Source: Laetmonice hystrix
Lineage: Eukaryota
NCBI GenBank assembly: GCA_965235115.1
Contig: OZ249441.1
Span: 27,218,001 to 27,282,000 of the forward strand
DNA: 64,000 nucleotides
Reading direction: 5' to 3'
The position numbers were made by a program, and so were the translations under genes. The notes beneath the pieces were generated by a model that was not told the origin of the DNA, ran no database searches, and saw only the letters and a list, made by a program, of their open reading frames with translations. Shown here piece after piece: positions 4,987 through 47,115 of the stretch (positions within the stretch are counted from its first letter, which is position 1; every line of letters starts with the position of its first letter).

Positions 4987-6012
4987 ATGCCTCAAGTGAA
5001 GGGAACAGCCACCTGGTTGACGAACGTCCGCCAAGAGTTGCCTCGACAGAAGGTGTGGATAGATCAGAGCAAGGCCCGCATGGAGAATGCCCGAATGGAC
5101 GACGACCTGAGGGAGGCTGTGGACAGATTACATTTACGAAATCATCGCCACCTCACCGACACCAACTACGTGTTAGACGAGGTGAAGAGGGAGGTTGAAA
5201 AGTGGCAAACTATGCAGGAGATCGTAGCTAGGCGGCGTTGTAAATCGGCCTTTGTAAGCCGCAGTTCTGTGCAGAAGGTGGCCACACCAGACAATTCTGG
5301 AACAAGATGTAAAGGAAATCTCAGACACGCAAGGGAACAACCAGTTTCTTCTTCTGACATGAAAAGTCCTGGGTTCCAGAAAGCTTCAGAGAAGACACCT
5401 CGGCCTAAAACAGCAACTGCGGCAACAGGACAACGTGGACTGTCGGGACAGATTGGCCTGTACCCGGTCCAAGAGGACGGCACACCAGGACGGTATGACT
5501 CACGGTCCTCATCCGAGAAATCAGGGAACCCCCATCTGACATCAGCAACTCTCCGCCTGCCGCCGGGGAGGAGGAAACGCGCCAAAGTTTCCGTCAAAAG
5601 GCGGCACAAATCGCACTCCGCCTCGCTCGTTAGGAATAAATCTGACGAAGATGACCGATCTTGGGAGGGGGTTTCTCAGGGTGGACAGATGCGTAGAGAG
5701 CGTTCGAAAACGGCTGGGCCATCACGGTTACGGGTTCGGAGCACGGGGAGCACCAATGACGTCGGAGACGCGCTACTCGCAGACGAACCCGCGTCATTCA
5801 GTCAGCTGAAAGACAAGGTCCACATTGACTACGTTTCTCTGAGTCGCGAAGACTCTAAAAGGACGGACGCGATGAATCTTAGACACACACAACGTGCGTC
5901 AGATCAGATGGCACTTCAAATAAGGATTGATGCATTCTGTAAACGTATCGACGAGTTTAAAAAACGTTGCTCTCAAAATTCGGCTTCTTTTTCAAAAGTG
6001 CTTGAACTCTAA
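4987..6012 (+). CDS. Uncharacterised 341-aa protein (helical/coiled-coil N- and C-termini, basic Ser/Arg-rich disordered middle)
   Basis: Long ATG-initiated ORF that is GC-richer than its flanks and not repeat-derived. No family recognised. Confidence 0.7.
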   Translation: MPQVKGTATWLTNVRQELPRQKVWIDQSKARMENARMDDDLREAVDRLHLRNHRHLTDTNYVLDEVKREVEKWQTMQEIVARRRCKSAFVSRSSVQKVATPDNSGTRCKGNLRHAREQPVSSSDMKSPGFQKASEKTPRPKTATAATGQRGLSGQIGLYPVQEDGTPGRYDSRSSSEKSGNPHLTSATLRLPPGRRKRAKVSVKRRHKSHSASLVRNKSDEDDRSWEGVSQGGQMRRERSKTAGPSRLRVRSTGSTNDVGDALLADEPASFSQLKDKVHIDYVSLSREDSKRTDAMNLRHTQRASDQMALQIRIDAFCKRIDEFKKRCSQNSASFSKVLEL

Positions 6013-7260
6013 CGGATGAAAAGATCTTCAGGACGGAGGTGCATGCCAAGATTGCGACCCCCGTGTACGAGATTTTTCTATATTAGAAAAAAAACTATAC
6101 ACATCTTACCTACTAGACCCCGAGGGCCCCCCCTATTATAGGCCTATACATTTGTAGTATAGGTAGGCATAGATTCTAAGAGATTTGTTTAACGGTCCGT
6201 TAGAGGAGAAACATAGGCCTACCTAACTCCTGCATTACTAATTAGGCCTATCCAGTTAGCCCCCTAAAAGAAATTCCTTGATCCACCCTTGCATGCAGTA
6301 GGCCTATAGCGCAGAACGTGTAACCTATCTACATCTATGAACTACATGTTGTACTCTAGTGCGGCTAAGCCTACTTGAGTTTGGTGAAGTGTTTGATCGC
6401 AGATTTGATCTCAATTTTATCTCTTGCCTGTAACTCTGAGCTTTTGATTAGGTACATGCAAACAGGGAAGTTATCGGAAGATATAAAGATTTTTAGTCAC
6501 TATATAGCGCTCTCAATATATCATAATTATTTATTATATTTAGGTATTGTGCACGTAACAGAACTGAACAAACTGACTTCAAATCACCCGTTTAACATTG
6601 TGACGATAATTGGTCCTTTGGTAAACATCCACTTTCGCATTTGGAGGGGAAGTCCGAAGGTTTCGATGATGTCCTGCTATAGCTACAATATAGGCATAAT
6701 GTTTCGGTCACGTGAAATGGATGAGTCAGGATGTATACCCGTATACCCGTGCACATTGTCAGCGAGACCAGGGTCAACCACCAGACGGACACGGTGGTCT
6801 GGAGCTGCCATAACAACTTCACAGAACGCTGGGAAATTCCCGCCCTCGCGAAGCTGTTTTCCTCTTAGCCAGCGTAATATCAGTGACGTCACTGAAGTGG
6901 TCCGACTACCTCTCCGGCCAACATATAGAACGCCGTGTTAACAAGTTCACGTGATAAAAGAAAACTCCGTCGGCATGGTTATGAAGCAAAGAGTTTGAAT
7001 ACAACCAGATAGTATAGGCCTACAGGCCCCTACAAGAACGGTGCCTCAGACACGCCAGCATCATTCATGGTAGAGTACCTAGGCCATAGCCTACTCCAGC
7101 TAACTGACTTCACAACGTCATCCTATAATAATTATTAATCGTGCCGGATACAGCATCTAAGAGGAGAGGCTGGAGGCGTTTATAGCACCTACACTAAAAT
7201 ATAGGCTGAAAGCGAACACCACATAATATCCAACTTCTGACGGTGTAGTGTAGGCCTACC

Positions 7261-13383: not shown

Positions 13384-14460
13384 TAAGCGGACGGTAATAG
13401 ACAAAAATTCAATTGCCTGAATTCTGAATTGATCGGTCTAGAAAGAGCTTTTGAATTACCCGACCATAATTATGATCGAAGGGAAATTTACAGGGAGCCA
13501 ATTTCAAGTTTGTCTTTTCTCCTCATACTACAATAACAAGGCTACAGTTCTGGAACAGTTGTAAACGTCCGAGACGAAAGGGTGGGATTTATTTCTCTGC
13601 AGGCCGGACTTATAAATCAAACTTACAAGGCCCCGATCACGCGGGCCACGTCAAGGCCGGGTAGTGGTTAGGGGGACGGGGTGAGGATTTGGAAGAAATC
13701 CGGGGGCCGGGAGTAGGAGTTAGGGTTAGGTTACTTTAGGGGTAGGAGTTGTGATCAATTATAGTTTTCACCACCACATTACGCGGGAATATTACAATTG
13801 GGGGGGGGGGGGGTCTACATGGATAAAACCATCCACGGGCCACAGGGGAGTGTTCATGCCCCAGGTTGAATAAATCAGTCAGCCATAAGCCTACCCCCTA
13901 CATTACATGTATATGATTTTACAATCAGAAAGCTGCAATAAACTAGTTTCATCAAAACACTTACAACTAGGCCTCCACGACTGTTCTTTCAAGAACATTA
14001 ATATGGCCGTTCCGTTAATAGCATATCGAAATATAGCCTCGCACGGGAAAGACACCATTACAATCATATAGATATTACAAACAAATCACTTCTCAGAAAC
14101 TTCCAGGTAGTTTGGCAACATCCTAACACAGTTCCTAACACAGTTCGTAACCTGTGCTTGTGCTGCCACCTAGCGTATATGTACAGATACAAATTGGCGT
14201 ATTCTTACCCCGAACAGGGCGAAATGCTGCCGATTGGGCTCAACTCAATGCACCTGCTTGCACTCTTACTGCGATACCTCTGATATGTTTAATCTATAGT
14301 AGGCCTACCCATTACCAAACACGGGTTCATCTATCTATATAAAATTATAGACTATTCCAAACGTAGGCCTATTATGTTATGTCAAAAAAATTCTAATGGC
14401 GGTTCAACGGGTTGGGCACTTCAACATCAAACGCAATTTGTATATAGTTCCTAATCACGA

Positions 14461-17400
14461 GGGGAGTGGCGGTGGCCTAGTGGGCATGGATGTCGACACC
14501 TTATGCTATGCGAATGGGTGCAGTAATCTTAGGGCCTGGGTTCGATTCCTGTAGAGGACTATACAACTTTTCTCTTTAGGGACATTGTCAAAGTAATTGG
14601 GTTACCCCTGATGCCCGTGCATTTCAAAAGAAAAATACAGGCAGGTGTGGTATCTAGGTTACTAATCACTACAGGAAGGTGGGCTATATAATGTCCTAAT
14701 CACTACAGACTACAGGGAAGTGGCGGTGGCCGAGTGGGCATGGGCGTCGATACCTTATGCTATGCGAATGGGTGCAGTAATCTTGGGGCCGGGGTTCGAT
14801 TCCTGTAGAGGACTATACAACTTTTCTCTTTAGGGACATTGTCAAAGTAATTGGGTTACGCCTGATGCCCGTGCATTTCAAAAGCAAAATACAGTCAGGT
14901 GGGGTACATAAGGTCCTAATCACTACAGTCTGCTGGGGTACATAAGGTCCTAATCACTACAGTCAGGTGGGGTATATAGGGACCTAATCACTACAGGCAG
15001 GTGGGGTATATAGAGACCTAATCACAAACACAGTCTACGCCAGTGCCAGATTACCTTAACAGTCAATGTTCGGTAGAAATCCTGTGTAGCTCTATCTAGG
15101 AAAATATGGATTCCGTCTCATTTCGGAAGATGTGTGTAGGGGGGAGGGTCCATTGTCCTGCTCGACCACCAAAGCTCCTTTTTTAGGGGAGTGGCGGTGG
15201 CCTAGTGGGCATGGATGTCGACACCTTATGCTATGCGAATGGGTGCAGTAATCTTAGGGCCTGGGTTCGATTCCTGTAGAGGACTATACAACTTTTCTCT
15301 TTAGGGACATTGTCAAAGTAATTGGGTTACCCCTGATGCCCGTGCATTTCAAAAGAAAAATACAGGCAGGTGTGGTATCTAGGTTACTAATCACTACAGG
15401 AAGGTGGGCTATATAATGTCCTAATCACTACAGACTACAGGGAAGTGGCGGTGGCCGAGTGGGCATGGGCGTCGATACCTTATGCTATGCGAATGGGTGC
15501 AGTAATCTTGGGGCCGGGGTTCGATTCCTGTAGAGGACTATACAACTTTTCTCTTTAGGGACATTGTCAAAGTAATTGGGTTACGCCTGATGCCCGTGCA
15601 TTTCAAAAGCAAAATACAGTCAGGTGGGGTACATAAGGTCCTAATCACTACAGTCTGCTGGGGTACATAAGGTCCTAATCACTACAGTCAGGTGGGGTAT
15701 ATAGGGACCTAATCACTACAGGCAGGTGGGGTATATAGAGACCTAATCACAAACACAGTCTACGCCAGTGCCAGATTACCTTAACAGTCAATGTTCGGTA
15801 GAAATCCTGTGTAGCTCTATCTAGGAAAATATGGATTCCGTCTCATTTCGGAAGATGTGTGTAGGGGGGAGGGTCCATTGTCCTGCTCGACCACCAAAGC
15901 TCCTTTTTTAGGGGAGTGGCGGTGGCCTAGTGGGCATGGGTGTCGACACCTTATGCTATGCGAATGGGTGCAGTAATCTTGGGGCCGGCGTTCGATTCCT
16001 GTAGAGGACTATACAACTTTTCTCTTTAGGGACATTGTCAAAGTAATTGGGTTACCCCTGATGCCCGTGCATTTCAAAAGAAAAATACAGTCTACGCCAG
16101 TGCCAGGATTACCTTAACAGTCAATGTTCGGTAGAAATCATGTGTAGCTCTATCTAGGAAAATATGGATTCCGTCTCATTTCGGAAGATGTGTGTAGGGG
16201 GGAGGGTCCATTGTCCTGCTCGACCACCAAAGCTCCTTTTTTAGGGGAGTGGCGGTGGCCGAGTGGGCATGGGTGTCGACACCTTATGCTATGCGAATGG
16301 GTGCAGTAATCTTGGGGCCGGGGTTCGATTCCTGTAGAGGACTATACAACTTTTCTCTTTAGGGACATTGTCAAAGTAATTGGGTTACCCCTGATGCCCG
16401 TGCATTTCAAAAAAGAAAAATACAGTCAGGTGGGGTATATAGGTTACTAATCACTGTTCAATTCCTGTAGAGGACTATACAACTTTTCTCTTTAGGGACA
16501 TTGTCAAAGTAATTGGGTTACGCCTGATGCCCGTGCATTTCAAAAGAAAAAAACAGTCTACGCCAGTGCCAGATTACCTTAACAGTCAATGTTCAGTAGA
16601 AATCATGGGTAGCTCTATCTAGGAAAATATGGATTCCGTCTCATCTCGGAAGATGTGTGTAGGGGCGAGGGTCCATTGTCCTGCTCGACTACCAAAGCTT
16701 CCTACTTTAGGGAAGTGGCGGTGGCCGAGTGGGCATGGGCGTCGATACCTTATGCTATGCGAATGGGTGCAGTAATCTTGGGGCCGGGGTTCGATTCCTG
16801 TAGAGGACTATACAACTTTTCTCTTTAGGGACATTGTCAAAGTAATTGGGTTACGCCTGATGCCCGTGCATTTCAAAAGAAAAATACAGTCAGTTGGGGT
16901 ATATAGGTTACTAATCGCTACAGTCAGGTGGGGTATATATGGCCCTAATCACAGTGGGCATGGATGTCGACACCTTATGCTATGCGAATGGGTGCAGTAA
17001 TCTTAGGGCCTGGGTTCGATTCCTGTAGAGGACTATACAACTTTTCTCTTTAGGGACATTGTCAAAGTAATTGGGTTACCCCTGATGCCCGTGCATTTCA
17101 AAAGAAAAATACAGGCAGGTGGGGTATATAGGTTATTAATCACTACAGGCAGGTGGGGTATATAGGTTCCTAACGCCAGTGCCAGGATTACCTTAACAGT
17201 CAATGTTCGGTAGAAATCATGTGTAGCTCTAACTAGGAAAATATGGATTCCGTCCCATTTCAAAAAGATGTGTGTAGGGGGAGGGTCCATTGTCCTGCTC
17301 GACCACCAAAGCTCCTTTTTTAGGGGAGTGGCGGTGGCCTAGTGGGCATGGGTGTCGACACCTTATGCTATGCGAATGGGTGCAGTAATCTTAGGGCCTG

Positions 17401-17525
17401 GGTTCGATTCCTGTAGAGGACTATACAACTTTTCTCTTTAGGGACATTGTCAAAGTAATTGGGTTACCCCTGATGCCCGTGCATTTCAAAAGAAAAATAC
17501 AGGCAGGTGGGGTATATAGGTTCCT
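14461..17525 (+). repeat. Tandem array of a tRNA-derived (SINE-head-like) Pol III unit with interspersed ~30-bp minisatellite and ~150-bp spacer modules
   Basis: Full heads start at 14461, 14715, 15186, 15440, 15911, 16244, 16710 and 17323; truncated heads at ~16456 and ~16953. Each full head has A box TGGCC(T/G)AGTGG, B box G(G/C)GTTCGATTCC and TTTT about 18 nt downstream. Confidence 0.92.
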
Positions 17526-20500
17526 AAAGACTACACTCAGGCCTATCTTTGTTATTTCATTCCTTACACAGAGCCCTCCGCCCCTCTCCACACCCAACCT
17601 ACATAGACAAGACATAGGAAGTAACACCCCAGGCCGCAGAAAACAATTCTGTATAGATTAGGTCCTATTGCTTCTAGAACCCTCTCATTGCAGTAAGGGG
17701 CATAATCCCTTGCTTTGCACACTGTCCGCTTCCGAATTTTCGAGATACGGTGTTTTATGCAGATTTAACCCCCCCCCCTCCAGAGCACCTGGATCCGCCC
17801 CTGCCCTGTACCCCCCCCCCCCTCCCACCGTCCTCACCCCGGACCATTCCTTTCTTTCTGCATGCTCCTCCTCTCACAATTTTGGACCTTATAAGGATAT
17901 GGTCTGGTGGGTCGTCGGTGTTGGTGCTAAGAAACACCTAAAATATTGACACGGTATAGTGGTGTACCGGAGAACCGACTAAACAACATTTGTCTATACG
18001 GCGGCATCACGACCGGGGGACTGGTGGAAGTTTGTGGCACATGCTGGGGGGAGTATGCATGTTGTGCATGCCAAGTGAAAATCCTTCCTGTTAGCTCTCG
18101 TGGGAGCATGATCTAAACAGTGATTCATACTTGTAAGGAACAAAACGAGTTGATAGGTTGTTTGGATCGTGCCAAGAATGGCCTGACACCCTCCATAAAA
18201 AACGCGTGCTTTTTATTTGACACCCCTCCAAGCACGAGCCCAATCGAGGGGGTACGTTTTTATAGCAACGATTAAACTTTGTATATGATAATGCACATAT
18301 TGGACCTATAGTACTTGCAACATTAGAGACTTCTCAACTTTCTGTTTACAGAATACTGTACATACTATAGTATAAGCATGGATAAGTGTGAACGTACATA
18401 TATATAAGTCATGGAATGCTGAAAGAAACAAAATACTCCACAATATCGACCCCTTCAACCCCTTCATATGAGTGCTGGCCTTGAATCAAAAGAAAGTATG
18501 GACCTGTTAGTCGCAGCACGCTAGTTTTCCTATCGGCCTATTGTCTATATACATTGTATAAATATATTATTAAAGTCGGGAGGGCAACAAGTGCAGCGCA
18601 CCGATTTCGGTTAGACACCTTTCGGATTTCAAGGATGTGGTTTATGGCTAGTTCAGCCAATGACCGTGTTTTTTATACGTGGTCCTTAACCACATCGGAG
18701 ATTCGAATAGACTATAATACACACACTTAGTCTGGCAGGTATAAGGGATGGTTGTCGTCTACGATACAGTGGGGATCATTCTTCCATAAAACAAACCTCA
18801 TGAGAAGCCTCAGGAAGAATTCACACATAGAAGGATCAGTGTCGGTATAGGCCCCCGACCCACCCGGGGAGATATACGGTACGGAAGGTACCAGAACTTG
18901 ACGCTACTATTAGAACGGGTCACTGCGTCAAGATGACATCACAACTTGTCAATAGGCCGAGAGCTATAAAAACACCCAGCTCATCTAAAGTCTTCACATT
19001 GACGGCTACCTAGGCAATGACACGTGCCGAGTTAGATTTTCTCCACTTTCAATTCCATATAAGGATCTCAAGGTATAGGCACGCAGTGTAGGGAATCTAT
19101 GTCTGGAGAAAAAGTATACTACTACTGCATGATAAACTGGTTACATCATAATACATTGTAATATGGATATGAGACGGATAAAACCTGCTGGTGTCAGACA
19201 AGGGATTAAATTGCACATTTTATTGAATTGGATGTATTAGACAGCTATACGTTGGGCCTATATTTACTGTAGCCTTTCTTTTTCTCTGCAGTTGACTTAT
19301 ACTTTATCAAATTCAATATCTATAGGCCTCCCGCCCGGTTCGCGTTCGACCATGTAGATTATCTTTTTTTACGGGGGGTTGACCCCCCCTCCCTTTGCCT
19401 TGGCAGTGACATCACACAGAACCCCCCCCCCTTCCGACCAATCCTGGCTTGGCCCTAGCTGTGGTAGGCCAGGTATCCTGTAAGTATATGAATATACTTC
19501 AATAACTGTCGACACAGAATTCATCAAACCATAAATACTATTTTGGGATACTGTTGGGGACTGGTATAAGTTGCCCTCCGTGTGGTATTGTATTGAGCAG
19601 AGCCGGTTCTAAGCGCCCCATCAACATGTATACTGACGGCCGGCCAACAAACCATTAATACACGCAGAAGAAATTCCGCCCGTCCCCCCCCCCCCCCCCC
19701 ACCGCACGCCAACCCCTGTCTTGGAGGCGATAATAGAATTTTGCGCTCTGCTGGTTACATATATAGATCCTCTGGCAGACAACCTCTGTGTGCTGTCAGC
19801 GTGGGCGAGGGTTTCATCAGGCCACACAAAGCACTGGCCTCTTGTCGATATTTGGTTGCCAGGTGGACGGTATAGAGACAACCGGCCGGCCAATAAGTGC
19901 GAGACTGCCCGCCTCCCGTACTGGATCCACATAAAAACAAACTGTGCCAGACTGTGAATAGACATAGAAAGTGTGTCACCTGGATCTTCCAGATTAAGAG
20001 CGGGAGGGGGAGGGTGCAGCAAACTGATACCAAGACATTTCTGGCTAGCTGACTTTGAATATGATCATATCCATATCGAGGTAAAGTCATGGATTTTCTT
20101 TTATCGTGATCGTAAGGAAATCGTCACGGACAGAAGACACGGCCCCACCCCTTCCTGGCTTCCTCTTCGTGGTGCCTTTTGGAAAGAGGAAGCATGATCT
20201 TGGAATACGTCACCGGACATTACAGGCAAATTGAACCTGGGGATACTTACTGCATGGGAACATTCCCCAAATATAACATTCTCTGTTTCTTGGTTGCTAT
20301 GATTTGCTATATCATCGGCTTATAAATAACCGGGTATCGAGTTACAGGTCTATAAAAGGCCATTTTTATTTTAACGCAGGGTGAAAGGGCTGGGGTAATC
20401 AGACTTTGCCCTCCCCTATCTTTTGAGAGAGGGGGTATGGCCCCTGTGGTTCCAGCCTTTCCTACTCCCTCTATATCATGAAAACACTGTAACCTCGACC

Positions 20501-43859: not shown

Positions 43860-44180
43860 ATGCACGGGCATCAGGCCTAAAGGCCGGTTGATAGTCCGTC
43901 GGCCGACCATCGCTCGACGTCAGGTCAAAGTTCACGTAGACTTAACTCTCAGTGATCGGTCGGCCGACGGCCGGATCGCTGCAACTATAAACGTTCAGCG
44001 ATGGTCGGCCGATGGTTGGCCGACGGACTATAAACTGGGCTTAACTTATACACTTTCAGAATGTCCGGAAAGAGAAAATTGTAGGAATCGAACCCTGGCC
44101 CCAAGATTACTGCACCCATTCGAATTATAGATCTAAGCTTCTAAAGTATCAACGACCATGTCCACTGCTACTTCCATAAA
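43860..44180 (-). mobile_element. Decayed solo copy of the tRNA-derived array unit (SINE-like), interrupted by a MITE
   Basis: The reverse complement reads GGAAGTAGCAGTGG..CATGGTCGTTGATAC..CGAATGGGTGCAGTAATCTTGGGGCCAGGGTTCGATTCCTACA..TTTTCTCTTTCCGGACATT..[MITE]..GCCTGATGCCCGTGCAT, collinear with the array unit. Confidence 0.85.
43881..44041. mobile_element. PIF/Harbinger-type (Tourist-like) MITE with TAA target-site duplication
   Basis: TAA at 43878-43880 and 44042-44044. TIRs AGGCCGGTTGATAGTCCGTCGGCCGACCATCG / CGATGGTTGGCCGACGGACTATAAACTGGGCT. Confidence 0.85.
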
Positions 44181-47115
44181 GGGGGTTAAGGTTTGTGTGT
44201 GCGTTGGGGTGGGTGGGGGGTTCCTTTTACTTCAGAAGTTTGTTTTAACACAAAATTTTTCTCATCACACGTGTAGCAAAATAAAAATACATATTATAAA
44301 GGGACCAATTTTGATGGAGGTACAGGCATACGTGAGGCATACGTATACTGGCATATTGGTTTGGCGAATAAAAAAAGGAAAAGGGTTGCGGCGCAAGAAA
44401 GACCATAACAATGTTCTATTTAACAAATGGTCCGTCCCTTTATGAAAGACAGCAACGTACCTTCATGCATTTATTAGGCCTATAGATCTCAAGGACAAAG
44501 TAATTAATGCACCAAATGATTTATCTAATGTCGACCTCTACATGGCATGACCTTTTGCTCGGTCATTTCCGAGGCAATATCCCGTGTAAATACATCAACA
44601 CTGCTCACAAGTCAACGGATATTTTTGACGCGTCTTCACCTGTCTTCAAGTCTGTACGATTGTACTCTCCAAAATTGATCGACATTATCAAGAAACTGCA
44701 GAAAGTGCGAGCTAGGAGGAAAGTTAGTCCTGCACCTGGAGATGCCCAGGCTGAAACGGTGCCACCAGCGCTCATCCCCGACACGCTATACCGAACGATC
44801 CGAAAGTTGGCGAAACCTTCGACCAAGAAGCGTTCCTGGTTTTTGATCGAGCAGGTTAAACTGCCAGCGTTCCAGTTAGCCGCAAACTTAACACATTGAA
44901 GCTCCAGCCGTCAAGCCATCATCGAGTGAGGAGAAACCAAAACGTTTTCGCTTCCCAAATCATTGCGACCTGGGCAGCTGGCCTGTGCTGCTTTGTCGAC
45001 GTTGAGCAGCCCCCAGCAGCATCGACCAAGTCGACAGGAAGCACGGCGTCGAACCGAGAAGTCATTGACCCTACCGCCACGTCCAGCTTTTCTCGAATAC
45101 CTCAGGCGTCATCGAGCAGACAATAGGGCCTACTTTGTTCAGTCTTGGCGGCTTCGCATACATGATATCTTACCAACGGCAGCATTCAGCGCATTCACTC
45201 CGGCTGGAAACACCAGAATTTAAGGCCGACAAACGTTGACCTGCTGAAGCTGAATCTTGCGAAGGAAAGAAGAAATAGCTCGAGGTCGAGCTTAAACGGC
45301 CTGAACCCACTGTCGCGGTTTAGCCACCGCGTGGATTTCCGTTCGGTGATCCAAAAGATCAACAGAAACTATAGATGTATAGTCTTGTTATAGTAACCTG
45401 GATTACGTGCATTTCCAGCACGCCAAACGGGAAAACGCGCGGAAAAAACGCGGCAGTAGGTCCACGCCTAAAGTTAGAAGAACGACGTCCCGAACGAGTG
45501 CTGAAAAGAGGAACGCCGGCCGGGACGCGAGACAGTGCCGCCAGCAAGAACGTGGAAACCAGGTAGGCCTACTATACTATAAAAAAAAACATAGGCACGG
45601 GCAAGAAATGTTACCATAATGAAGGCCGACTTAATAATTAAGTCAGAGAATGGTTTTTACCACCGTTACCAGGTATTTTACGGCAGGCAGCTGACAGTTC
45701 CCTTGCCCAAAAGTACTAGCATCTACACAATGTAAGTTCAAAAATGGACCTATAGGCCCATCTAATTGAAGAGGGGGGTTATGTTGATAGGCCTATCTAT
45801 TTAGCATTAATGGTTTCATATTTCGGTCAGGAGAGCTAAGATCGCGACCGAGAAGAAACTCCGTGAAGCCGAGCGAAATGAAGCGGCAGATTGAGAACAA
45901 ACTGTGAAGACCACCTGCCCCCCCCCCCCCTGCAAGACGTGATTTGGGGTCGAGCCTTCCCCATGGTCTATGGCGAATGACCTGTTACCTTCTTTGAGTG
46001 GGCACTGAGCCTCACGATCCATCGGTACTGGATTAGGTTTCATTTACTGACAAATTGTAAGTTAGGCCTACTCCATGTAGCCTAGGCCTACATGCATGGA
46101 CAAATCGACCGTCTCCCATGAACGGCATGGGCCACACGGTCGAGATGCGGCAGCGCCTGCTGGCGGAAACTTTGATAACTATGGCATGGGCATGGCCCAG
46201 TTCGCCAAAACACATGTTAATATCGGATTAGTTGTCGATTCTCTTACAATCTTACAAGGTACTAAAATATTATGATCATTTCAGACTTTGATACATTATC
46301 CCTGCTTGATATATGATAGTTTGAAGTGCCGATGGGGAGCGCAAGACGGTAAGCCGACTGGCCACTGGCACTGAATTGGGTGCTGCCATCTATCGTTTTA
46401 ACTCTAAACTAATATGGAGTTCCAAGTCAAAAGGATAGATGGCAGCACCCTTTTCCGTGCAATCTAGCGGGAACTAATGGAACTAATTACGATTCACCGG
46501 CAGCGATGAAACTTCACTTCGGTTCGGCACTTCAAACGTTCATAGCGATGAACGAAATAATGCTTATCGCGTGTCAAGAGGGAGTTAAGAAGTCAAATTG
46601 AAATGATGATTGGATTTCCTGCAGATTCTAAGTGAATTGTCAAAGGAATCGTCTCGAAGATGTAAAATCAGCTTTCAAGGCTTCATAAAAGTGCCGCCAG
46701 CAGGCGCTGGTGTATATTGACCGTTCCGAGGATGGGTGGCACGTTGGTGTTCCATGACTAGTAACGACCCGGTTAGGGAATCCACAGCGTCAACCAGATT
46801 AGGTACATACGGTAATGAGCACGGCATAACTTTGTTATCGCCTTGATCAAATTAAATCTGTGTCTTAATAGCAGAAAGAAAACGCATCAAGGCCTAACTT
46901 TTTTATGTCCCCTAGGGGTGACTGTGGGGTATCTGCCCCCACTGGTGACCAAAAGGTAGGCCCACGACCTTGCCCCCCCCATCTAGGCCCATTCCATATC
47001 TAAAATAGCCCGGTAGTCCAACTGTTGATCTGGTTCCACCCCCGCTTGTTCCACAGAGGATGCCAATAGATACGATAACAAAATCCCACGAAATAGGCCT
47101 GCTGTATTAAAGATC

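Follow-up and report, generated by a model that had tools for sequence, protein, structure and literature searches.

Short interspersed elements (SINEs) are short retroposons with an internal RNA polymerase III (Pol III) promoter of the tRNA-gene type. The tRNA-type SINEs of stringent long interspersed elements (LINEs) have 5′-proximal A and B boxes, a length of ~180 nt, thousands of copies in both orientations, a fixed 3′ end with 5′ truncation, duplications of variable length, subfamilies, and a repeat tail with a unit of 2–8 nt. In the blood clam Scapharca broughtonii, SINEs form tandem-like arrays of the type TSD1-(SINE-TSD1)n, in which up to ~15 head-to-tail units share the same short duplicated separator at many loci, an arrangement credited to unequal recombination between the duplications (PMC11481361). 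Metazoan retrozymes without long terminal repeats (LTRs) are dispersed dimers to multimers of ~300–330-bp tandem units that are near-identical within an array, and a reverse-transcription origin of their tandem copies has been proposed (PMC7229834). Helenus/TRIMp3 elements have a short internal segment between two copies of a tRNA-like Pol III module and occur as tandem chains and solitary copies (PMC10886601), and PcH-Sat of Patella consists of SINE-derived tandem units in long pericentromeric arrays that make up to 10% of the genome (PMC11121367). Here we describe a cluster at positions 14461–17527 of a 64,000-nt stretch of the Laetmonice hystrix genome (hereafter the window; contig C6, 27,218,001–27,282,000, of a genome of 627 Mb in 35 contigs). 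The cluster is probably a nest of copies of a young, high-copy SINE family, here called S, that targets its own tails and has used some composite templates carrying a second module, B.

The cluster is built from three modules, S, T and B, all on the + strand. Module S (~183 nt) begins with GGGGAGTGGCGG; its A box (TGGCCKAGTGG) and, 55 nt past it, its B box (GGTTCGATTCC) are exact matches, and a run of four T (T4) lies another 18 nt on; both consensus boxes are confined to the first 90 nt of the unit, and a body of ~90 nt follows them. The 3′ terminus of S is fixed at ..CATTTCAAAAGAAAAATACAG(TCT), that is, ..AAAAGAAAAATACAG(TCT), and is often followed by one or more copies of module T, a 34-nt tail or target unit (..AGGTGGGGTATATAGGnnCCTAATCAC TACAG) found in runs of 1–4 behind many S copies, each unit terminating in ..CCTAATCAC|TACAG. 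Module B is a 152-nt spacer after the S end and closes with CTCCTTTTTTA immediately 5′ of the next S start. No similarity between S and B is detectable (local alignment score 17 vs a shuffle mean of 18.8), and a derivation of B from a second, decayed tRNA-like module was rejected. BLAST of the canonical 333-nt S+B unit against the window recovered eight full-length S copies, two 5′-truncated S copies and five B segments. The eight S heads (GTGGCGGTGGCC) lie at 14466, 14720, 15191, 15445, 15916, 16249, 16715 and 17328, and one truncated copy begins at 16456 with unit position 80, the other at 16953 with unit position 19. An original prediction, made from this sequence, had recognized eight full units, each with an A box, a B box about 55 nt later and a T4; T4 is present in all eight, and both boxes are perfect in seven, the unit at 15911 having a mutated B box. 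Its ~105-nt transcript layout (14466–14571) is correct as geometry, given the spacing of the boxes and T4. That description is accurate but incomplete, as it did not include the two truncated copies, the 152-nt B module, the 34-nt T units and an exact 725-bp duplication described below.

A genome-wide copy search (patterns with at most two mismatches; reversed-pattern controls all gave 0 matches) recovered 5,671 matches to the S core, a 36-mer across the B box and T4, with 2,971 in forward and 2,700 in reverse orientation. The same search found 4,429 matches to a 32-mer of the S head, at least 1,016 to one 35-mer of module B, and 2,433 to a 28-mer of module T, the last almost always next to an S or B match. 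On the chromosome-scale contig C1, the 100 core matches listed come from the first 23 Mb and fall into ~53 loci, and about two-thirds of these listed matches lie in multi-copy clusters, many at 334-bp spacing. Chaining the matches in a sample of 62 loci (given L-numbers here) plus the window yielded 81 independent insertions. The 3′ end falls at unit position 176–185 in 69 of the 81 (85%), with the shared terminus ..AAATACAG[TCT], and 20 insertions (25%) start at unit position 1–5, vs 1.2 expected under uniform starts. The latter starts lie ~12 nt upstream of the A box, which is where transcription from a type-2 Pol III promoter is expected to begin, and the remaining, 5′-truncated insertions start anywhere in the unit. 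There are minor excesses of starts at unit position 182–186 and just 3′ of a G-run, at ~287–296. We also observed starts clustered at unit position 292–308, 3′ of the B-module G-run GGGGGGAGGG (e.g., L024, L025, L033, L043, L054 and L060), a pattern that would fit stalling of a reverse transcriptase at a G-rich structure.

Exact target-site duplications at unique sites measure 13 nt (L039), 24 nt (L035), 27 nt (L042) and ~45 nt (L031, L048), and a ~30-nt duplication flanks a whole six-unit array (L008). Overall the duplications span 13–48 nt, vs a chance expectation of ~5–6 nt for the longest shared word. Their first bases, (T)ACAG, are those with which S ends, and the target just upstream is usually ..CAC, a motif found within 3 nt at about half of all 5′ junctions. 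By analogy with established LINE and SINE biology, this end structure would be that of target-primed reverse transcription with microhomology between the target and the 3′ end of the RNA. The SINE ancestry favored in the original prediction is strongly supported: copies are dispersed in their thousands, share a fixed 3′ end, show 5′ truncations and are flanked by target-site duplications.

Within the window, the cluster opens with S1 (14461–14640; full-length, unit 1–180, haplotype GTATCATC), which has its A box at 14473, its B box at 14539 and its T4 at 14568. It is followed by a T run of 2.2 units, each ending ..AATCACTACAG (14641–14714), by the full-length S2 (14715–14896; haplotype AGGCTGGG, with GGGAAGTGG.., CGAG and CGCC), by a run of four 34-nt T units (14897–15025), and by B1 (15026–15185), a 5′-truncated piece that starts at unit position 173 directly after ..AATCAC, comprises the last 9 nt of an S and the 152-nt B module ending in a run of six T (T6), and is contiguous with S3. 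The segment 15186–15910 (S3, T, S4, T, B2) then duplicates 14461–15185 exactly, without a mismatch over 725 bp. Next comes a canonical [S-B] unit of 333 nt (S5 and B3, 15911–16243; haplotype GTGTCGGC), with the first G of its B box mutated to C, followed by the full-length S6 (16244–16427; haplotype GGGTCGGC), a single T unit (..TAATCACT; 16428–16455), and S7′ with B4 (16456–16709), a 5′-truncated insertion without an A box that starts at unit position 80 directly after the T unit. The right part consists of the full-length S8 (16710–16891; haplotype AGGCTGGG), a T run of 1.8 units ending ..CCCTAATCAC (16892–16952), the 5′-truncated S9′ (16953–17114), which starts at unit position 19 directly after ..AATCAC and has a truncated A box, a T run of 1.7 units (17115–17172), a 5′-truncated [B-S] insertion from unit position 184 (B5′ and S10, 17173–17502; S10 haplotype GTGTCATC), and a terminal partial T unit (GCAGGTGGG + GTATATAGGTTCCTAA; 17503–17527) that repeats the 5′ flank, with unique DNA from 17528. 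The cluster is bracketed on both sides by GTATATAG(G)TTCCTAA (14440–14455 and 17512–17527). The 5′ flank itself (14440–14460, + strand) is a degenerate T-like unit (GTATATAGTTCCTAATCAC + GA), and since its first 16 nt recur at the 3′ edge of the cluster (17512–17527), the pair is a probable target-site duplication.

The junctions between these parts follow a simple rule. The truncated pieces stand directly behind a T unit ending ..AATCAC, whether they begin at unit position 173 (15026 and 15751), 80 (16456) or 19 (16953); the exception is the piece from unit position 184 (17173), for which the preceding T unit is partial and ends ..GGTTCCTA. On their 3′ side, all S copies of the window pass straight into T or B. 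The same rule holds at six other loci (L021, L041, L047, L052, L055 and L060): here and in the window, truncated S or B+S pieces (from unit positions 9, 12, 19, 33, 80, 108, 134, 173, 184, 236 and others) start 0–1 nt from the ..AATCAC of T, and 0 nt separate an S 3′ end from T. As the junctions lie at T ends and at least four subfamilies are present, the cluster would have grown by repeated insertions in the same orientation together with one 725-bp duplication. Copies thereby appear to pile up head-to-tail by landing in the 34-base tail repeats of older copies, and the most parsimonious history starts from one insertion with a long duplication and continues with repeated insertions into re-created targets and then the exact 725-bp duplication.

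The mixture of copies is that of the family at large. The S segments of the window comprise at least four haplotypes over eight diagnostic positions (GTATCATC, GGGTCGGC, AGGCTGGG and GTGTC..), which equal genome-wide subfamilies on contig C1 and differ by 0–3 positions from copies there; two window copies, S1 (14461–14640) and S6, are identical to contig C1 copies. The original prediction had noted near-identical, CpG-intact copies, and this agrees with the comparison to contig C1. It had also read shared variants as shuffled among the copies; the variants are real, but because the haplotypes exist elsewhere as subfamilies they do not stem from local gene conversion. Full-length copies diverge by 1.4% from the consensus at non-CpG, non-diagnostic sites, and decay of CpG to TG or CA has affected 7 of 425 sites (1.6%), values that make S a young family, and this youth is enough to explain the intact cassettes. 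Subfamily-diagnostic changes lie outside the boxes except for those at N positions of the A box. Three diagnostic 21–24-mers had no match in the full-text literature; S is an undescribed SINE family and ordinary repeat DNA, and its points of interest are its self-targeting and its composite arrays.

In its 5′-proximal boxes, length, copy number in both orientations, fixed 3′ end, 5′ truncation, variable duplications, subfamilies and repeat tail, S resembles the tRNA-type SINEs of stringent LINEs. Unlike them it has a tail unit of 34 nt, a head too diverged for a tRNA score and a T4 inside the element, and it strongly prefers its own tail units as targets.

The enzyme, nick site and RNA templates that we infer for this family would work as follows. 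A LINE-type endonuclease and reverse transcriptase may nick DNA at CAC^(T)ACAG-like sites, after which the nicked strand would anneal to UACAG at the 3′ end of the S RNA and prime cDNA synthesis. An early stop of this synthesis would produce 5′ truncation, and a second nick 0–48 nt away would produce the target-site duplication. Each T unit, and the 3′ end of each resident copy, would re-create the target motif, so that new copies would arise beside old ones in the same orientation and build S-T-S-T clusters. Some templates may have been longer RNAs read from [S-B]n arrays, which would account for the B-containing pieces of the window and for arrays with a 334-bp period. Finally, a recent DNA-level duplication of 725 bp would have doubled the left part of the window cluster. 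The sole reverse-transcriptase-like open reading frame (ORF) near a copy (FADD motif, 0.8 kb upstream, L001) had no Pfam match and ends in its own (AAACTC)n microsatellite tail; it was rejected as a partner of the family, as this tail assigns it to a different element. At another locus, a solitary S has landed ~1.6 kb from a second ORF (L037:4103–4999, − strand), an ordinary host gene exon encoding ZNF598 PAH and C2H2 domains (E 6e-24).

The promoter signals exceed chance. The array contains 8 exact A boxes (TRGCNNAGTGG) vs 0.65 expected by chance per window, and 8 exact B boxes (GGTTCGANNCC) vs 0.32 expected; both boxes are exact and 55 nt apart in seven of the eight full units, the exception being the unit at 15911, and T4 sits 18 nt behind every exact B box. 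The boxes of S fit the tRNA-gene consensus, and the element is a candidate for Pol III transcription. Another B-box match, near 45,050 on the − strand, was set aside as chance, with no SINE around it. Among full-length copies, T4 (unit position 108–111) is intact in 89 of 93. The ~70 nt 3′ of T4 are present in every copy, and some truncated copies begin past it (unit positions 112, 123 and 134); T4 does not appear to define the end of the propagating RNA.

Several observations weigh against this interpretation, which should be read with them in mind. The S head, which may resemble the D-arm of class II tRNAs, was not recognized as tRNA-like by Infernal or ARAGORN, so the label tRNA-derived is owed to the two boxes. 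T4, and T6 at the B end, should stop Pol III before an RNA competent for retroposition or spanning several units is made; the templates would therefore need read-through (a leaky T4 in this animal) or another polymerase. Some of the minisatellites that flank insertions (a 38-mer ×71 and a 45-mer ×49) are too long to be by-products of insertion, and the perfect identity of units inside [S-B]n arrays is not specifically predicted.

These minisatellites merit a closer description. Tests for flanking repeats placed about 40% of the insertions so examined inside a minisatellite or at its margin. The units measure 22–52 nt, and each ends ..CAC(T)ACAG, in phase with the S end; such repeats cover ~1.3% of the window outside the array. 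The long examples with an in-phase S insertion are a 38-mer ×71 (L002:318–3036), a 45-mer ×49 (L048:1804–4024), a 52-mer ×31 (L036:4348–5957), a 22-mer ×43 (L033:2661–3598) and a 29-mer ×18+18 (L032:1563–2973). The 52-mer family occurs at at least five loci, and the 34-mer is also present at many. An origin of the minisatellites solely from iterated target-site duplications is weakened, as several are 30–70 units long and extend on both sides of the insert; pre-existing or tail-derived targets are more likely than insertion by-products. Near the window cluster, a 12-mer (TCCTAACACAGT ×2.6) at 14121–14151, 300 bp upstream, resembles a shortened T unit (CCTAA..CACAG) and contains a target-like motif, and a run of 14 G lies at 13800–13813, ~650 bp upstream.

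The arrays of [S-B]n at other loci bear on how composite templates arise. They have a 334-bp period and 1.3–6.3 units at many loci, with S always last and an arbitrary 5′ start. In five such arrays the full units are identical within each array (0 mismatches), and between arrays they are 1–4 positions apart. Since B is the same everywhere, the arrays must spread as pieces of more than one unit, which might be templated by linear multimer RNAs transcribed from arrays already present or by a circular unit RNA, or might arise when the enzyme jumps end to end on a B-S RNA. Some arrays have also been copied as DNA: identical 5.3-unit arrays lie 2.6 kb apart (L038:2446–4205 and 5045–6804), and three 3-unit arrays occur at 9,478-bp spacing (contig C1, 19,974,028–19,993,687), so that segmental tandem duplications carry entire SINE arrays at both places.

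One may postulate that the 334-bp unit was propagated through a unit-length circular RNA, or through template jumping on a linear B-S RNA, and that rolling reverse transcription from the TACAG priming site laid down tandem cDNA, in the manner of a retrozyme with a Pol III, tRNA-like module in the place of the hammerhead. The proposal applies to canonical arrays and to those parts of the window that contain B, and would refine the SINE interpretation rather than replace it; we regard it as unlikely. It draws on the 4–5 full units per canonical array with 0 mismatches, set against the 1–4 positions that separate arrays, on array ends that always fall at unit position ~181 with arbitrary starts, on the rarity with which the Pol III start site coincides with the start of multi-unit arrays, and on the ~30-nt duplication around an entire 6-unit array. 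Array sizes fall roughly geometrically (41, 25, 10 and 5 chains in rising classes), and 4 insertions start at unit position 182–186 vs 1.2 expected, as a linear B-S RNA predicts.

The layout of dispersed ~300-bp multimers also matches that of metazoan retrozymes (PMC7229834), and like these the [S-B]n arrays are dispersed tandem multimers, with a 334-bp unit inside the ~150–450-bp range of retrozymes, without LTRs and near-identical within an array. Unlike retrozymes, however, the [S-B] unit has Pol III boxes and no detectable hammerhead or other ribozyme: hammerhead, twister and other self-cleaving ribozymes were not found at E≤10 in the unit or in a stretch of 1.6 units. Nor is the predicted 333-nt RNA (z −1.05) self-paired to the unusual degree of retrozyme circles. 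Units would likewise be homogenized by recent unequal crossing-over or gene conversion, and an exact DNA-level duplication is seen in the window; with no ribozyme and with recombination able to homogenize the arrays, we keep the rolling template as a rival only. A related and similarly doubtful possibility is a ribozyme-less, retrozyme-like element whose unit RNA would be set by the tRNA-like Pol III module and T6, possibly cut and joined by tRNA-processing enzymes.

A satellite formed in place would require a single SINE insertion amplified by unequal crossing-over between target-site duplications or tail repeats, with variants shuffled by gene conversion. The exact 725-bp tandem duplication is DNA-level amplification at this very place, canonical arrays elsewhere have identical units, and unequal recombination between target-site duplications is the published explanation for bivalve SINE arrays (PMC11481361). 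The S clusters resemble those Scapharca arrays in their head-to-tail SINEs, in the same short duplicated separator and in their presence at many loci, but their truncation points and subfamilies point to independent insertions, and S has a second array type with a 152-nt spacer. In the window, ten S segments have four different 5′ ends (unit positions 1, 19, 80, and 173/184 through B), each adjoining T, and recombination between equal repeats does not create differing 5′ ends; the haplotypes, moreover, represent subfamilies of the whole family that recur on another contig, where two have counterparts without a single base difference. We therefore consider amplification in place quite improbable. 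Of the original term satellite SINE, the SINE and one local duplication stand, while the in-situ amplified satellite gives way to separate insertions of several subfamilies. PcH-Sat offers a parallel of SINE-derived tandem units, although it forms long pericentromeric arrays, and the S arrays have at most ~6 units at hundreds of euchromatic-looking loci (PMC11121367).

It is very unlikely that S-B-S is a miniature LTR retrotransposon of the Helenus/TRIMp3 type. In such an element the LTR, with its tRNA-like Pol III promoter, would be S; the primer-binding site and polypurine tract would belong to B as the internal region; and S copies standing alone would be solo LTRs, with the arrays as LTR-internal chains. 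The order S-B-S, with S always last in arrays, and the abundance of solitary S copies recall such elements, in which a short internal segment is likewise framed by a repeated tRNA-like Pol III module. At the B end, a T-run leads into AGGGGAG and TG, resembling a polypurine tract in front of an LTR; S can be read as TG...CA; and Helenus is known in molluscs, brachiopods and nemerteans (PMC10886601). This reading is contradicted on two defining features, however. The 5′ ends are imprecise, with starts scattered over the whole unit, and solitary full-length copies begin GGGGAG, thereby including the would-be polypurine tract, instead of TG; no TGG-type primer-binding site is present after the S end, and the duplications of 13–48 nt share microhomology with the 3′ end, vs 4–5 bp in Helenus (PMC10886601).

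Equally remote is the proposal that the units are genes for a functional ~105-nt Pol III RNA, vault-like or SINE-derived, or form a chromatin boundary bound by transcription factor TFIIIC. SINE-derived small RNAs do exist, mouse 4.5SH being an example; most copies here keep both boxes and T4 intact, and the diagnostic changes touch the boxes only at N positions of the A box. Real tandem Pol III gene arrays are also present in this genome. We observed dozens of tRNA genes with identical scores and 2–8-kb spacing at 27.26–27.46 Mb of contig C7 and at 71.03–71.23 Mb of contig C1; these clusters are genuine tandem Pol III gene arrays, in contrast with the SINE clusters.

The RNA searches lend such a gene array no support. 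ARAGORN found 0 tRNA genes in the window and 0 in 36 related loci (~100 copies), the whole window had no match to Rfam at gathering thresholds, and at E≤10 only noise was returned for a 3.4-kb region, for a single unit and for a 541-nt stretch (1.6 units). The Infernal models for tRNA (RF00005), vault RNA (RF00006), 7SL and ribozymes had no match at E≤10, while genuine tRNA genes of the same genome, as a positive control, score 60–73 bits with RF00005. Against dinucleotide shuffles the fold z-scores are +0.83 for the 111-nt RNA, −0.31 for the 182-nt RNA and −1.05 for the 333-nt unit, so the RNAs of these three lengths are predicted to fold no better than shuffles. The GTGGCGG and AGAGGAC strands do not pair as an acceptor stem, in keeping with the earlier statement that the unit cannot fold as a tRNA, and a vault-like terminal stem is absent, as had been remarked. 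The suggested likeness to vault-type RNAs, on the other hand, finds no support in the empty RF00006 search and the fold of the 111-nt RNA, nor does the unannotated small-RNA gene array in the empty Rfam searches and the lack of excess folding energy. The cassette, moreover, recurs more than 5,600 times in the genome and bears retroposon hallmarks, two array units lack a full A box (none in S7′, truncated in S9′), and the integrity of the boxes is explained by youth (1.4% divergence) and selection on source copies. Helitron and miniature inverted-repeat transposable element readings were rejected, as there are no terminal inverted repeats and no 5′-TC/CTRR-3′ ends, with long duplications and 5′ truncation instead, and so was a classical satellite, as the largest observed arrays have ~6 units, hundreds of loci are involved, and different modules and subfamilies are mixed in the window array.

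Older relatives of S are also present. The decayed dispersed copy reported at 44 kb is confirmed at 44052–44125 on the − strand, with 77% identity to unit position 48–134 and a different head and tail. A second old relative lies at L036:7559–7646 (− strand); both are 77–82% identical to S over unit position ~48–136, which suggests an earlier SINE family that shared the B-box region.

If a SINE nest is the correct interpretation, several consequences follow for the study of this genome. Thousands of copies with intact boxes would mislead gene finders, which is a reason to mask the cassettes as a SINE family in annotation rather than to record them as small-RNA or tRNA-like genes. Young, near-identical copies could serve as presence/absence markers in the species. 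The junctions described here show that SINE clusters can grow by same-orientation insertion into their own tails, beyond unequal recombination, and composite SINE-plus-spacer units also spread as multimers. Should unit-length RNAs prove to be the templates of these multimers, the family would form a bridge between SINEs and tandem retroelements of the retrozyme type, and a rolling template combined with homing into its own 34-nt tails would make it a self-sustaining generator of new tandem repeats.

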